A DNA stretch of 63,440 bases, filler included, from Reticulomyxa filosa (lineage: Eukaryota > Protista > Foraminifera): NCBI GenBank assembly GCA_000512085.1. It is 16 parts of 16 records of this genome, joined end to end, with 100 filler letters (N's around TTAATTAATTAA, not from the genome) between each part and the next. Parts side by side here need not be neighbours in the genome. Positions count along the whole stretch, not along the records: positions 38,226 to 41,501 come from ASPP01009511.1; 15 more parts are not named here. One strand, written 5' to 3'. The notes below the pieces were generated by a model. It had not been told where the DNA came from. It did not search any database and worked only from the letters and a program-made list of their open reading frames with translations. The translations under genes were made by a program, and so were the position numbers. Below, in pieces: positions 37,726-41,601 of the stretch. Position 1 is the first letter of the stretch. Each line of letters starts with the position of its first letter.

Positions 37726-38275
37726 CTAAAAAAATCGGAGAAAACAAAGAATCGTTCTGAATTGCGATCTCCAGTTGCAAAGACAAAGAATAATCCAATT
37801 TCGACAACTGCATCTTTCAGTCCTCGAAATGTATTTACCCCCAAAGTTTGGCCAGAATAGTCCAACATTGTGTCACATTTCGTTTTTCTTTTTCAACAAG
37901 TTACCCCTCCTCATATTCTCTCTTCTCGAAATAATTAGAAATGCACACCCAAAAAGGAACAGAAACGCACGTCAACAGAATCATTGTGGGAAAACGCCAC
38001 CGGATCGGATGAAGATCAGCCATTCTCATTGGCAATCTACACAAAAAAAGTTACAAGAAAGGTTACTAAATCATAGTCTTTGCGGTCTTTTTATAATTTG
38101 TTTCTCTCTTTTTTTTTTTTTTTTTNNNNNNNNNNNNNNNNNNNNNNNNNNNNNNNNNNNNNNNNNNNNTTAATTAATTAANNNNNNNNNNNNNNNNNNN
38201 NNNNNNNNNNNNNNNNNNNNNNNNNCTAATAAAAACTTAAAAAAAAAAGAAACGTATTATGATTATCAAACAAAG

Positions 38276-40258
38276 TTGTATAATTATTCCGCCTGTCTCT
38301 CTTCAACCACGACCTTGGGTTGCGGCATTTACAATGGAACGCAGACGCAATTGACGTGCATGTTGGCCAAGTACGAGACGTCCTCGTTACCAGCGGGATG
38401 TTGCCGGCGTGCGTTGGATCAGATATCGCAAAGTAACGTGTTTACGAAGGACTGTGCAGGTGACGTGTCCAAGTACTGTGGTAGTGACGGGAGTACGGCA
38501 GGAAACATAAGCGCAGCGTGCGCAACGACGCTGTTGTCCCAAAGGAATAGCAGCCAGTTGTCGGGCAATTGCAACCTCACGACATGGTATTGTCGAGTGG
38601 ACGGAGTGTGGCCGACGACGTTGGCGGGGAGCGAAGCCACAGTGAATTGTACGTCAGGATACGTAGGAATGAGAACGCGAAAATGCGTTGGCGGCAAAGC
38701 GAATACGAAAGTGTTGGTGCCGTATTGGAGCGACGACATCGATGACAGTGGATGTGCACATTTGTATTGCGACGCAGAGAAAGACGTATACGGGCAGACA
38801 TGGGGCGCGACCCCTGTGGGCAATGTTGCCACCTGGTTTTCCAAAGATGTGTCAAAAAATAGTTCATCGCAGTTTCCTTGTATGACTTTTACTTACGAAT
38901 TCAATTCGCGTTATTGCGGTCTTGAAAATGATACTACTAATGGCAATGGCAATGGCAATGGTATGAAAGCAAAGTGGTCGAATTCATTTGCTTATTGCAA
39001 ACCTTCATACTTGCAATGGGGTTCATCGACAAAGGATCAGACGTGCGATAAAACCAATAGCTCGATGCTATTTGAACTCGCCACGGCAAGTATGTACAGT
39101 AGCGACGAGGATGCCATTAGTGCATGCAAGAATAAGTGTCTAATTGATAGCATTCATTGCCACGCATTGGTATTCAATAACAACACCAAAGTTTGCTATG
39201 GGTTCGATTGGTGCTCCGTCAAGAAGGAAAAGGGACAGAACTGGACGTTCTATTATGTTCCCGCCGCGTTCCCGGAATGGATGGCGTCGGTGTGCGCGAC
39301 TTATTATTCGTGGTATCCTTCCAAGGCTTTGAATGATCGAGGCATCCCATATCCCTCGTGCTTCAATGTTTTCTTGTGGGAGTACTTGATGGACCCCAAA
39401 GGGGGCGCCACGTCCGTACCCAATTTCCGGTTGCAAAATCAAAATGTGTTGTATAATCCTTATTCCGGATATCTCAATCTGAAGATACGCTCCACTTCCA
39501 ACTCCTTGCTGGTCCAAAAGATTGCTGATGATGCCGTTGCGGTGAAGTTCATCGTGGCGTTGCGGGACTTTGTCGATACGCATTTCAATGACAACGAGCT
39601 GTGGGTGGCGCTGCATGGTCTGCTGTTTGATTTGGACACGCAATATATTCATATCACTCGCTACTTTGTCACCAACGTGCTGTTGCTGATCATCGCTGTA
39701 ATGCTTGCTGGCTTGCTATTCTTGATCCATCCCTTGGCTGCTTTTGTCATGCTGTTCACTGAAATAGCCACGATCATTGAAGTCTATGGGTTCATCGATT
39801 GGGCCGACCTCCACATGAATGGGGTACTCGCGTTAAATATGCTTGTCGCTGTAGGTCTGACCATGGAGTTTGCTGCACATATCGCTCGTGCTTTCATGCT
39901 GGCTTCTGCAAATCCTGAAGAAAAAATTGGCATTCCTCATGCACTGCCCGGACAAATTCGCATGAAAAAAACACTTCGCGAAGTATTCACGCCCGTCACT
40001 TTGACTGCCATCACTACCTTTATTGGAATTGCTCCAATTGCTTCTTCCACCTTCCCTTATTTCCGTGATTACTACTTTGTTTTGTATGTCATGATGATTC
40101 TAACCGGATGGGTCAACGGCGCCGTCTTTCAACCTGTCATCTTGTCATTCTTGAATCCTGCCACCTTTTCGCACGAAAATGATCCAACTCCAAACTCGAT
40201 AAACCACGAAACCATGATTGCTACCACAATTGCGCTCAATGATCACCACAGCGCCTAA
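38276..40258 (+). CDS. NPC1/Patched-family (RND-type) membrane protein, C-terminal exon with extra Cys-rich lumenal modules, 5' partial
   Basis: TM bundle with LNMLVAVGLTMEFAAHIARAF (cf. NPC1 VNLV..CGISVEFCSHITRAF), TAITTFIGIAPIA and YFRDYYF...GWVNGAVFQPVILS. Confidence 0.88.
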   Translation: MYNYSACLSSTTTLGCGIYNGTQTQLTCMLAKYETSSLPAGCCRRALDQISQSNVFTKDCAGDVSKYCGSDGSTAGNISAACATTLLSQRNSSQLSGNCNLTTWYCRVDGVWPTTLAGSEATVNCTSGYVGMRTRKCVGGKANTKVLVPYWSDDIDDSGCAHLYCDAEKDVYGQTWGATPVGNVATWFSKDVSKNSSSQFPCMTFTYEFNSRYCGLENDTTNGNGNGNGMKAKWSNSFAYCKPSYLQWGSSTKDQTCDKTNSSMLFELATASMYSSDEDAISACKNKCLIDSIHCHALVFNNNTKVCYGFDWCSVKKEKGQNWTFYYVPAAFPEWMASVCATYYSWYPSKALNDRGIPYPSCFNVFLWEYLMDPKGGATSVPNFRLQNQNVLYNPYSGYLNLKIRSTSNSLLVQKIADDAVAVKFIVALRDFVDTHFNDNELWVALHGLLFDLDTQYIHITRYFVTNVLLLIIAVMLAGLLFLIHPLAAFVMLFTEIATIIEVYGFIDWADLHMNGVLALNMLVAVGLTMEFAAHIARAFMLASANPEEKIGIPHALPGQIRMKKTLREVFTPVTLTAITTFIGIAPIASSTFPYFRDYYFVLYVMMILTGWVNGAVFQPVILSFLNPATFSHENDPTPNSINHETMIATTIALNDHHSA

Positions 40259-40847
40259 TAATCTGCTTCTTTCGAATCCCAAAAAAAACTAATATCAAAA
40301 AAAAAGAAACAAATGGATAAGAACGAAATTCAAGAAACCCAGGGATAAAAGATATTATATTTCCAAGGGATTGCTCTCTCTTTTTCACTTTGGAGCAACT
40401 CCATTTTTTTTTTTATATTAAAAAAAAATCGTAAATGTCAAATTTTTTGAGCTGGTGTGAATGACCATAGTGTATATTTATATCATTGCTCTCTTTTCAC
40501 TTGTTGAAAAAAAAAAACAAATCTCCTCAATTTTACAGTTTTGTGTACATGAAATAACGTTACGTTCTCAGCTCGATTTTTTTTTTAATGCGGGTAGGAA
40601 AGAAAAAAAAAGCTGCTTACTACTAGACGAATTAATAAAAACCTCGACAAGTAAACAAAAAGCAAACAAAAAATATAATTGCCAATTGATGCGCTCTTCC
40701 AACGCAACACCTGGCATTCTCAAACACAAGACATACACAAAAAGGTCGAAATTTTTTGTATTTAAAATACTTAAAAAAAAAAAAAAAAAACACTCACAAA
40801 GACCAAATTTTTATGCAATAATTATGAATTGAAAATGAATCCCCGAG

Positions 40848-41370
40848 TTACAAAATTGTACACTGACAAAAGCAACACGATTTTCTTTTTTTGTCAACCA
40901 GCGGTGGAAGAAAGCCCATATTACTTCTCTCAGTAGGCAAAAGTTTGTCATTGATGCTTGGATCTGGAATATTGTATTGTGTTGGAACATGCAGAGTGTC
41001 GATACTGTCATTTTCCATAACACGTTTTGCTGGGATAGTGCCTTGAAACATTGCTTGCGGATTGCAAGGTGTCAATTTCAAGAATTGACAAATAGCATTG
41101 CAATGATGCGATCTTAAAAACCTTTCCATACCCGATTGACCCATATTCCCCTGCCCACAACCTTGACCATCAAATGTATGCATTTGCGGATCAGTATATA
41201 AATCTCCAACTCCCTGAAGATCACAGATCAAAATTTTGTGTTCACTTGCCTCATAAGTGAAATGAGCAAAAGCCTGCGGTGTATTGCGACGCACTACATC
41301 ATTGATCCAGTCCCAATTGTTTGTATATTTTTTGTAATCTCCTTCAATATATGGTTCTACTCCACAACTG
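40848..41370 (-). CDS. Alpha-kinase (eEF2K/MHCK family) C-terminal exon with CaaX tail, 5' partial
   Basis: VEPYIEGDYKKYTNN, PQAFAHFTYEAS, ICDLQGV..LYTDPQMHT, GQGNMG and H.CNAIC; ends KKRKSCCFCQCTIL*. Confidence 0.92.
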
Positions 41371-41452
41371 CAATGCATTTATCCCATTGTTTTTATTTTT
41401 ATGTTTATCTTTTGTTTTTCATACAATTAAACGGGGGAAAAAAAAAGATGAC

Positions 41453-41487
<35 letters not shown>

Positions 41488-41601
41488 AAATAAAAAAAAA
41501 ANNNNNNNNNNNNNNNNNNNNNNNNNNNNNNNNNNNNNNNNNNNNTTAATTAATTAANNNNNNNNNNNNNNNNNNNNNNNNNNNNNNNNNNNNNNNNNNN
41601 N

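Follow-up and report, generated by a model that had tools for sequence, protein, structure and literature searches.

We analyzed a 63,440-nt stretch of Reticulomyxa filosa DNA (assembly GCA_000512085.1; hereafter the window), in which 16 parts of 16 genome records are joined end to end with 100 filler letters between one part and the next. The part from ASPP01009511.1 (positions 38,226 to 41,501) was found to carry a single open frame on the plus strand with the extent and the 660-aa length given in the initial annotation. The frame ended in a TAA and was still open on its left side up to the edge of the piece at 38226. The following features were identified:

38226..38275, + strand: AT-rich edge of the contig and probable 3' intron end, with candidate acceptor AGs at 38248-38249 and 38274-38275
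38276-40258, + strand: open frame of 660 codons with no internal stop and TAA at 40256-40258
38276..38587, + strand: Cys-rich, mostly helical module (aa 1-104) with 9 Cys including a CC pair, co-linear in relatives
38588..38755, + strand: HRM/HormR unit 1 (aa 105-160; C106, C125, C137, C160), from HMM and structure matches
38756..39004, + strand: HRM-fold unit 2 (aa 161-243; C165, C202, C214, C241), from hhalign and VIA
39005..39280, + strand: PAN/apple domain (aa 244-335; Cys 257, 284, 288, 295, 307, 313), from the AF2 fold and structure searches
39281..39670, + strand: membrane-proximal segment of the second extracytoplasmic domain, ECD2 (aa 336-465), conserved in relatives
39671..40159, + strand: Patched-type TM8-TM12 (aa ~466-628), from PDB and TIGRFAM matches and hydropathy peaks
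40160..40258, + strand: short cytoplasmic tail, variable among relatives, and the TAA stop

The two HRM-like units had originally been placed at ~38590-38755 and ~38767-38998, and the boundaries obtained here agree well with those positions. No in-frame ATG was present at 38226..38275, and the family alignments started at a conserved Y-D/N-Y-S-x-C motif at position 38279. In the relative L003, the equivalent exon was preceded by >500 nt of AT-rich non-coding DNA. TM1-7, the first extracytoplasmic domain (ECD1) and the first part of ECD2 would belong to upstream exons beyond the contig edge. Residues 1-362 held all 25 Cys of the ORF and 11 N-x-S/T sequons while the TM part had none of either; judged from the sequence, this confinement of Cys and sequons to the predicted loop is an extracytoplasmic signature.

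A search for the same architecture recovered the co-linear layout in at least six other sequences. The co-linear relatives were P0004 (Tara metagenome), the three JGI sequences P0006, P0007 and P0002, L002, P0033 and P0028 (a family fragment from assembly GCA_024449935.1), and the same layout was seen in a 2220-aa ORF from the transcriptome of Elphidium margaritaceum (P0034), of which P0007 is a near-identical cluster-mate. A fragment from Bolivina argentea (P0032) was also a member of the family. Scanning metagenomes with the family alignment yielded one further locus only, L002. A tick 'filaggrin-2-like' sequence (P0005) with 23 matched stretches was discarded as a probable compositional match, having no Pfam family and no TM. 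In both P0007 and P0034, TM1 and an SSD (matched by Pfam Sterol-sensing with an E-value of 2e-26) were followed by TM7 and then by ~1300 aa ahead of TM8, and their TM4 carried G-F-G-V-D-D at 490-495. Hydropathy of P0007 indicated two large extracytoplasmic domains, one after TM1 and one after TM7, and the window holds the end of the second only; ECD2 of the relatives contains about 700 more residues of other Cys-rich material. Since TM1, the SSD, the TM4 GxxxDD and TM7 all lie upstream in P0034, the modules are placed in a giant second extracellular loop, although the relatives that supply this topology and the SSD are only 28-45% identical and TM1-7 lie outside the window. The proposed arrangement, with HRM and PAN modules in an extracytoplasmic loop ahead of a C-terminal TM bundle, was found in the relatives in the same order, and its position in ECD2 was seen in a full-length relative.

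To which branch of the superfamily the TM bundle belongs was addressed with several searches. A PDB sequence search matched the ORF to Patched-1 (PTCH1) with an E-value of 4e-15 and to NPC1 with an E-value of 1.9e-12, and query residues 457/464-646 (~190 aa) aligned with TM8-12 of PTCH1. For the same ORF, the E-value was 7.4e-19 for TIGR00918 (Patched) versus 4.5e-12 for TIGR00917 (NPC1). The acidic residue of RND TM10 was present in G-L-T-M-E-F, which aligned to G-I-G-V-E-F of PTCH1, and this Glu (E531) was invariant in the family alignment. In the membrane-proximal segment, the motifs G-I-P, C-F and P-x-G-G were invariant in the same alignment, and the final ~30-40 aa of the segment aligned to PTCH1 immediately ahead of TM8. 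This segment together with the TM bundle (aa 324/348-628) was 44-45% identical to P0006 and P0034. The pN and pS values were 0.08 and 0.75 for the TM8-12 segment and, relative to L001, 0.25 and 0.85 for the membrane-proximal segment; pN was far below pS in every segment, and all segments are under purifying selection. A Pfam scan of the whole ORF gave no family at E <= 1, a result that is uninformative because PF02460 'Patched' in the release used covers only the SSD, which is absent from the fragment.

The full-length relative P0034 matched Patched-1 with an E-value of 3e-62 and NPC1 with an E-value of 3e-34. A search of P0034 for the NPC1 N-terminal domain (NPC1_N) gave no match, and TM1 lies at aa ~34-52 of P0007; the layout is therefore not the 13-TM layout of NPC1. 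Comparison at the sequence level indicates that Patched is a closer relative of the family than NPC1 is. Of the earlier label 'NPC1/Patched-like transporter', the superfamily and the Patched part were retained, whereas the NPC1 subfamily was rejected since Patched scored better both for P0034 and for the TM bundle in the window. The window shares TM8-12 homology and the TM10 G-x-x-x-E with Patched-1 (RND superfamily, TC 2.A.6.6), and the full-length relative likewise has an SSD, a TM4 G-x-x-x-D-D, a 12-TM layout and, by hydropathy, two large extracytoplasmic domains. On the other hand, ECD2 is roughly 260 aa in PTCH1 and about 1300 aa in P0007/P0034. NPC1, NPC1L1 and NCR1 belong to the same superfamily, but their TM match is weaker than that of Patched.

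We compared unit 1 with an HMM built from 151 HRM repeats of Pfam-HRM-positive proteins (47-176 bits on Pfam HRM, for which the gathering score is 26.2), from which the window had been excluded. Unit 1 scored 49.9 bits (E 9e-17) over model positions 2-49 of 50. The Pfam HRM model itself matched the window at unit 1 only, over model positions 13-45, with 15.8 bits (E 0.018), which is under the gathering score. Foldseek matched unit 1 to the HormR domain of BAI3 with a probability of 1.00 (rmsd 2.4 A, 64 columns), and the HormR domains of BAI3, BAI2 and latrophilin had probabilities of 0.97-1.00. With VIA, in which 48,161 chains were compared, unit 1 was matched to CELSR1 HormR (Z 5.5, rmsd 1.5 A, 51 aligned, 31% identity) and further to GPR110, BAI3 and the ECDs of GLP1R, PTH1R and GCGR.

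In unit 2, a ~30-aa insertion separates the two halves, and an N-G low-complexity loop lies at ~38930-38962. Its HRM-HMM matches were weak and split but were co-linear in P0004, P0006 and P0034. When a 4-sequence alignment of unit 2 was compared with the HRM-repeat alignment by hhalign, the probability was 90.5% (E 1.4e-6) over 52 columns that covered the whole template. VIA matched model residues 163-247 to Gpr126 HormR (Z 5.5, rmsd 2.4 A, 57 aligned), followed by VIPR2 (4.8), GHRHR (4.0), PAC1R (3.7), CRFR1 (3.6) and the calcitonin receptor ECD (3.6); HRM-bearing receptors accounted for about 17 of the 50 best rows. A structural Z of about 5.5 is modest and the domains are small. The AF2 model of aa 1-345 had an overall pLDDT of 52.9, so the better-predicted segments alone were used, with moderate confidence for the two units (pLDDT ~70-78 in unit 1 and ~35-73 in unit 2). 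Searching the PDB by sequence with either unit on its own gave nothing useful. Unit 1 and unit 2 are HRM-fold domains, as had been suggested from the sequence. Each has four Cys and not the six of secretin receptors, and the consensus of the tandem-repeat relatives described below also has four.

The units share with the HormR/HRM domain (PF02793) of adhesion and secretin GPCRs the fold and the motif C...W-P-x-T-x-x-G...C...G...R-x-C...W...C, and the identity to the HormR domains of CELSR1, GPR110 and BAI3 was 29-31% in structural alignment. They differ from GPCR HormR in the large insertion of unit 2, the sub-threshold Pfam score and the non-holozoan host; moreover, GPCR HormR adjoins GAIN-7TM, whereas the units in the window sit in a transporter loop. 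They are joined to the PF02793 family only via intermediate tandem-repeat proteins. By sequence, unit 1 was closest to tandem HRM-like repeat surface proteins (such as KAK8813074.1 of Blastocystis sp. and the metagenomic P0008, P0010 and P0011), in which the identity of single repeats reached 41-45%. These are single-pass or giant secreted/surface proteins that carry He_PIG, Sushi, Kringle or WW domains; they do not have the Patched-type TM bundle.

For the third module, AF2 with an 8-sequence alignment produced a model with a pLDDT of 76.1 and a pTM of 0.69. Of the ~45 rows returned by Foldseek, nearly all were PAN/apple-containing, and the top one was the HGF N domain (probability 1.0, TM 0.61). 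VIA matched the model to plasminogen PAN (Z 8.6), HGF NK1 (8.1), SML-2 (8.1), the kallikrein and FXI apple domains (7.7-7.8) and MIC4 (7.7). The top ~28 matches (Z 8.6-4.5) were exclusively PAN/apple/WSC/AMA1-type folds, with 77-83 of 96 residues aligned, and unrelated folds appeared only from Z 4.4 downwards. When the family profile was searched against the PDB, the top 15 matches were all the HGF N domain. Pfam PAN_1 gave 18.5 bits (E 0.0018), under the cutoff of 21.4, and matched two of six family members with a best E-value of 0.00039. Thus Pfam placed both the HRM (PF02793) and the PAN matches below the gathering score, while the repeat HMM, hhalign and structural comparisons supported the domains.

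The six Cys are spaced as in the apple pattern (C1-C6, C2-C5, C3-C4); the disulfides are predicted, the spacing being known from the sequence. C284 and C307 were lost jointly in P0006, P0034 and L002, a pattern that would fit the apple C2-C5 disulfide. The structural model indicates that aa 244-335 is a PAN/apple domain, in agreement with the PAN-like unit of the initial annotation. The whole 90-aa fold (TM 0.55-0.61, Z 7.7-8.6) and the six-Cys apple spacing are shared with the HGF N domain, plasminogen PAp, the factor XI apple domain and apicomplexan MIC4 and SML-2, with marginal sequence similarity. Unlike in these known domains, one predicted disulfide is missing from half of the family, and the setting in a transporter loop is new. 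A feature search of the ESM Atlas returned sub-0.9 leads only (PAN/Sushi, 0.76).

Taken together, the locus is best explained as the last exon of a gene for a Patched-family (RND) transporter of a foraminifer-like rhizarian, whose ECD2 bears modules and may serve as a binding platform; we estimate the probability of this reading at about 0.82. ECD2 would have been enlarged to 1000 aa or more via inserted disulfide-rich extracellular modules. The window would then represent the distal ECD2, with the helical Cys-rich module, an HRM, a second HRM with its loop insertion and the PAN domain, followed by the membrane-proximal segment and TM8-12. In RND and Patched proteins, acidic residues of TM4 and TM10 link transport to a cation gradient. 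The TM10 Glu is kept in the window, and the TM4 G-x-x-x-D-D and the SSD are kept in the relative; from what is known of the family, the protein may actively transport lipids or sterols with cations as the driving force. The HRM-HRM-PAN array could form a putative platform that binds an extracellular protein or glycan. Such a platform might hold the transporter at an extracellular surface, be it matrix, organic test lining or prey; alternatively, it might modulate the ECD conduit in the way that Hedgehog acts on Patched.

That the Cys-rich and TM parts come from different genes or transcripts and were misjoined in the assembly or gene model is extremely improbable. The contig is short (3.3 kb), which would favor such an artefact, but one stop-free frame spans the junction, conservation is unbroken over the PAN-to-ECD2 junction, and different projects repeat the order in six or more independent contigs, among them the 2220-aa transcriptome ORF of a cultured species. 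The protein is not a chimera because the architecture is conserved in relatives. A chance resemblance of Cys patterns within a lineage-specific Cys-rich loop has also been largely refuted and is very unlikely. It would account for the sub-gathering Pfam values (HRM, E 0.018; PAN_1, E 0.0018-0.029), for the empty whole-ORF scan and for the unproductive PDB searches with the individual units. It does not sit well with the full-length HMM match of unit 1 and the hhalign probability of unit 2, nor with the fact that two separate model segments each retrieved HormR and secretin-receptor ECDs from the whole set of chains. Similarly, the PAN model retrieved PAN/apple folds only down to Z 4.5, and the HGF N domain took all of the top PDB places.

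The initial annotation had favored a receptor-like Patched, in which a peptide, protein or glycan bound to HRM-HRM-PAN gates sterol or lipid flux, as a non-animal analogue of Hedgehog-Patched. We consider this reading unlikely, though less so than the two above, and ligand-gated sterol transport is speculation. In PTCH1, the two extracellular domains form the sterol conduit and bind Hedgehog, and the modules are located in ECD2, which takes part in both; they are also kept across divergent family members. In secretin-family GPCRs, HRM serves to bind peptide hormones, and both proteins and carbohydrates are ligands of PAN/apple domains (established knowledge and the discussion in PMC12716839). 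However, the HormR ligand is unknown even in adhesion GPCRs (PMC12716839), and neither a candidate ligand nor a downstream component was seen. The nearest kin of unit 1 are repeated in tandem, as many as about 20 times, within surface proteins that are giant or single-pass, and such arrays are typical of adhesive or structural repeats and not of dedicated hormone sensors. By analogy, HRM-type tandem repeats in single-pass proteins would point to a general role in binding or adhesion no less than to hormone sensing. The large amount of other Cys-rich material in ECD2 of the relatives also speaks against a receptor-like role. We know of no Hedgehog, Smoothened or other pathway context in Rhizaria.

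Work on Patched, NPC1 and Dispatched treats them as sterol transporters with a lipid conduit made up by the extracellular domains, and in animals Hedgehog acts at the conduit of Patched. To our knowledge, HRM, PAN and helical Cys-rich domains do not occur in any Patched, NPC1 or Dispatched protein. Our literature search for a Patched architecture with HRM or PAN found no describing paper, and HRM-HRM-PAN in a Patched-type loop appears to be undescribed. A protist lineage with HRM and PAN/apple domains in the conduit loop amounts to a natural experiment in how lipid transporters of the RND type gain extracellular regulation or anchoring. If the foraminiferal Patched were ligand-controlled, Patched signalling under the control of a ligand would have evolved independently outside animals, and HRM as a ligand sensor would have a pre-holozoan or horizontally acquired history. 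A 2025 survey found HRM largely restricted to Holozoa, plus Fonticula (PMC12716839); this survey left out Rhizaria and, ciliates excepted, other SAR lineages. The HRM-fold units in foraminiferal Patched-like proteins and the HRM-like arrays in the Blastocystis protein bear on the history of HRM.

The helical module at the start of the frame was specific to the family. A Pfam search of 38228-38590 at E <= 10 gave no family, Cys_rich_FGFR (PF00839) included, and the earlier description of this region as a GLG1-like Cys-rich repeat was rejected for want of a profile match. AF2 predicted helices at residues 44-102 with low to moderate confidence, the pLDDT being ~70 for aa 60-100 only. The module was co-linear with P0004 323-424, P0006 679-795 and P0034 1390-1522, and a second partial copy of it was detected at aa 80-136 of P0006.

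The piece of the window at 38226-41501 (3276 bp) carries a plus-strand frame that runs without a stop codon from the left edge of the piece up to the TAA at 40256-40258. The first ~50 nt of the piece are AT-rich and have no in-frame ATG, candidate acceptor sites lie at the end of this AT-rich edge, and a conserved Y-D/N-Y-S-x-C motif, encoded from 38279, is where the alignments with related proteins begin. On L003, a contig with a related locus, more than 500 nt of AT-rich non-coding DNA precede the equivalent exon. Because of these features, we read 38276-40258 as the putative final large exon of a spliced gene of a eukaryote, with the exons upstream of it presumably off the contig.

38248-38249, plus strand: candidate acceptor AG
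38274-38275, plus strand: candidate acceptor AG
38276-40258, plus strand: the frame studied here (660 codons; amino acid numbers count along it)

A word-index protein search identified, beyond the window's own gene call, only P0002 (66% identity), encoded on JGI contig L001. In every segment compared between the window and L001, the proportion of non-synonymous differences (pN) was far below that of synonymous ones (pS), which was saturated.

Substitution proportions, window relative to L001
PAN region: pN 0.35, pS 0.92
ECD2 core: pN 0.25, pS 0.85
TM bundle: pN 0.08, pS 0.75

In a PDB sequence search, aa ~457-646 aligned with TM8-TM12 of Patched-1 (E 4e-15), and the alignments with NPC1 (1.9e-12) and NPC1L1 were weaker. 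The NCBIfam models TIGR00918 (Patched) and TIGR00917 (NPC1) matched at E 7.4e-19 and 4.5e-12, respectively. The TM10 motif G-L-T-M-E-F aligned with G-I-G-V-E-F of PTCH1, so the cation-coupling acidic residue of RND/Patched proteins is retained; this Glu was invariant in the family. A Pfam scan of the whole ORF matched no family; PF02460 'Patched' in the release used is a 156-position model of the sterol-sensing domain (SSD), which the window's fragment does not contain.

An exhaustive HMMER search of 1.84 billion representative proteins with aa 1-445 gave 32 matches of two kinds. Those of the first kind were co-linear with the window over the Cys-rich region and on into the TM bundle, and both family members with an organism name are from Foraminifera (Elphidium margaritaceum and Bolivina argentea).

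Co-linear relatives
P0004: 1023 aa, Tara metagenome; one alignment of 703 columns, E 3e-112
P0006: 1603 aa
P0007: 2132 aa, cluster-mate of P0034
P0034: 2220 aa, Elphidium margaritaceum transcriptome MMETSP1385
P0017, P0028, P0032 (Bolivina argentea) and P0033: fragments
L002: one further locus, from a metagenome DNA scan

P0007 and P0034 are full length. They matched PTCH1 at E 3e-62 and NPC1 at 3e-34, carry a Pfam Sterol-sensing domain (E 2e-26) and have G-F-G-V-D-D in TM4; profile and sequence searches with them gave no Dispatched match and no NPC1 N-terminal domain. In P0007, TM1 (aa 34-52), the SSD and TM7 (aa 598-616) are followed by ~1300 aa without a hydrophobic segment and then by TM8-12 (aa 1925-2070). 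Since this is the full-length layout, the Cys-rich modules are predicted to sit within the giant second extracytoplasmic loop (ECD2) of a Patched-like 12-TM protein. The loop holds all 25 Cys and 11 N-glycosylation sequons of the ORF, as expected for what would be an extracytoplasmic, disulfide-bonded ectodomain. The initial annotation had proposed an NPC1/Patched-like transporter with modules in its lumenal loop. The topology agreed with this placement, and a single transcript of a cultured species (P0034) encodes both the modules and the TM domains, so in that species they are not on separate transcripts. The Patched side of the label was borne out, while the NPC1 side fared less well, given the weaker match and the missing N-terminal domain. 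The rest of ECD2 in the relatives (P0034 aa ~700-1390, P0006 aa 1-680, P0004 aa 1-322) comprises a further 300-700 Cys-rich residues with 27-31 Cys and no Pfam match.

The part of the loop in the window begins with a segment (aa 1-104) that is conserved across the family and helical in the AF2 model; P0006 has, at its aa 80-136, one extra copy of the first half of this segment. No Pfam family, GLG1-type repeat included, matched it even at E <= 10, and we dropped the earlier GLG1-like label and call it a family-specific module, predicted to be helical and Cys-rich. A Dermacentor silvarum 'filaggrin-2-like' protein (P0005, XP_037564830.1) matched aa 43-101 in 23 short stretches (E 2e-29). Neither a Pfam family nor a TM segment was seen in it, and the match is probably due to composition or low complexity, not to homology.

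The second kind of HMMER match covered only aa ~84-142, often in many copies per protein, and these proteins scored well beyond the Pfam HRM gathering score (P0008, 93 bits; P0009, 84; P0010, 155; P0011, 176; P0013, 65; P0003 from Blastocystis, 47 in sum). An HMM of 151 of their repeats, built after removal of the window seed, had the consensus ...C-p-a-D-G-e-W-P-e-T-e-a-G...C...G-t-r-t-R-l-C...W...C. It matched aa 105-160 with 49.9 bits (E 9e-17, model positions 2-49 of 50) and the equivalent unit of P0004, P0006 and P0034 with 38-43 bits. When aa 1-345 were modelled with AF2, the pLDDT of this unit was ~70-78. The highest-probability Foldseek rows were the HormR domains of BAI3 (probability 1.00, 2.4 A, 64 columns), BAI2 and latrophilin-1; ECDs of CRF receptors came next. 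VIA, a structure search independent of Foldseek that covered 48,161 chains, returned CELSR1 HormR (Z 5.5, 1.5 A, 51 aligned, 31% identity), GPR110, BAI3 and the ECDs of GLP1R, PTH1R, PTH2R, GCGR and the CGRP receptor. The Pfam HRM model itself gave only 15.8 bits, and therefore membership of this unit rests on intermediate sequences and the predicted fold, which together sustain its earlier assignment as HRM. P0008, P0010, P0011 and P0013, the bridge from this unit to Pfam HRM, are single-pass surface proteins from metagenomes in which 3-7 four-Cys HRM domains in tandem occur together with Sushi, Kringle or a cytoplasmic WW domain; their hosts may be holozoan or not.

On the second unit the repeat HMM gave no more than a weak match, split into two co-linear halves, in several members of the family. 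Profile-profile comparison of a 4-sequence family alignment (aa 160-243) with the repeat alignment covered the whole template (probability 90.5%, E 1.4e-6), with ~30 extra residues between the W-x-x-T-x-V-G strand and the ...R-x-C...W...C half. For residues 163-247 of the model, which was less confident here than in the first unit and has an N-G low-complexity run in a loop, VIA returned Gpr126 HormR (Z 5.5, 2.4 A, 57 aligned) and the ECDs of VIPR2, GHRHR, PAC1R, CRFR1 and the calcitonin receptor, a set different from that of the first unit. We accept it as a probable divergent HRM-fold domain, with less certainty than the first. Because relatives lack the N-G-N-G-N-G-N-G run (~38930-38962, last loop), it seems to have expanded recently by slippage in a surface loop that tolerates it.

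From sequence alone the case for the PAN/apple unit would be marginal. Pfam PAN_1 matched the window at E 0.0018 (18.5 bits, with the cutoff at 21.4) and two of six family members (best E 0.00039); the top 15 PDB matches of the family profile were all HGF N domain (E 0.014-0.19), and the next was an apple domain of Toxoplasma MIC4. Folded alone with an 8-sequence alignment, aa 240-335 gave an AF2 model with pLDDT 76.1 and pTM 0.69. Nearly all of its ~45 Foldseek rows contained PAN/apple domains, among them HGF N (probability 1.0, TM 0.61), plasminogen, leech antiplatelet protein, Eimeria PAN, SML-2, factor XI and prekallikrein. The first 28 VIA rows were PAN/apple or the allied WSC and AMA1 folds (plasminogen, Z 8.6; HGF NK1 and SML-2, 8.1; kallikrein and FXI, 7.7-7.8; MIC4, 7.7), and the first unrelated fold had a Z of 4.4. 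Six Cys (257, 284, 288, 295, 307 and 313) have apple spacing. P0006, P0034 and L002 each have both C284 and C307 replaced, as the loss of one C2-C5 disulfide would look. The predicted fold thus upheld the proposed PAN/apple identity.

Known ligands of HRM and PAN/apple domains are peptides, proteins or glycans. In this protein a conserved string of such binding-type domains is borne by ECD2 of a Patched-type TM machine that keeps its coupling residues, both in the half that the window covers and in the full-length relative. The reading we favour is a lipid transporter with an ECD2 array that would tether it to, or sense, an extracellular partner; by family knowledge, the TM domain would move a sterol-like lipid through a conduit of ECD1 (the first extracytoplasmic domain) and ECD2, driven by a cation gradient. 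The stronger proposal made earlier, that a ligand would gate the transporter in analogy to Hedgehog on Patched, is possible. The nearest relatives of the first HRM unit occur in surface proteins as tandem repeats of many copies, a setting that suggests adhesion or scaffolding no less than gating.

A full-text literature search of partial coverage found no HRM or PAN domain described for a Patched or NPC1 protein and nothing on Patched-family proteins in Foraminifera. From the 1.84 billion proteins, the search recovered only a handful of Patched-type proteins (P0004, P0006, P0007/P0034 and fragments) with such an ectodomain. For both reasons, we rate this as a combination of known folds and a known transporter family that appears undescribed and lineage-restricted, seen in the window without the gene's N-terminal half. 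An HRM survey reported a Holozoa-plus-Fonticula range, with ciliates as its only SAR coverage (PMC12716839). P0003 (KAK8813074.1), a giant single-pass Blastocystis sp. protein of 4434 aa, has ~20 units like the first HRM unit (summed E 4e-67), which are interspersed among 21 He_PIG Ig-like domains, and thus places HRM-like modules in a stramenopile, outside that range.

Non-coding DNA of the piece (40259-40847 and 41380-41501) has a GC content of ~30% and long runs of A and of T (such as ~40775-40792 and ~41455-41483) and exons are 45-55% GC, a contrast that marks exon borders in this organism. Downstream of the transporter frame, a 590-nt AT-rich spacer is followed by a convergent exon:

40848-41378, minus strand: C-terminal half of an alpha-kinase domain (Pfam PF02816, E 1.9e-37, profile positions 91-185)

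This frame is cut at 41379 by AT-rich, intron-looking sequence, so the kinase gene, too, continues off the contig.
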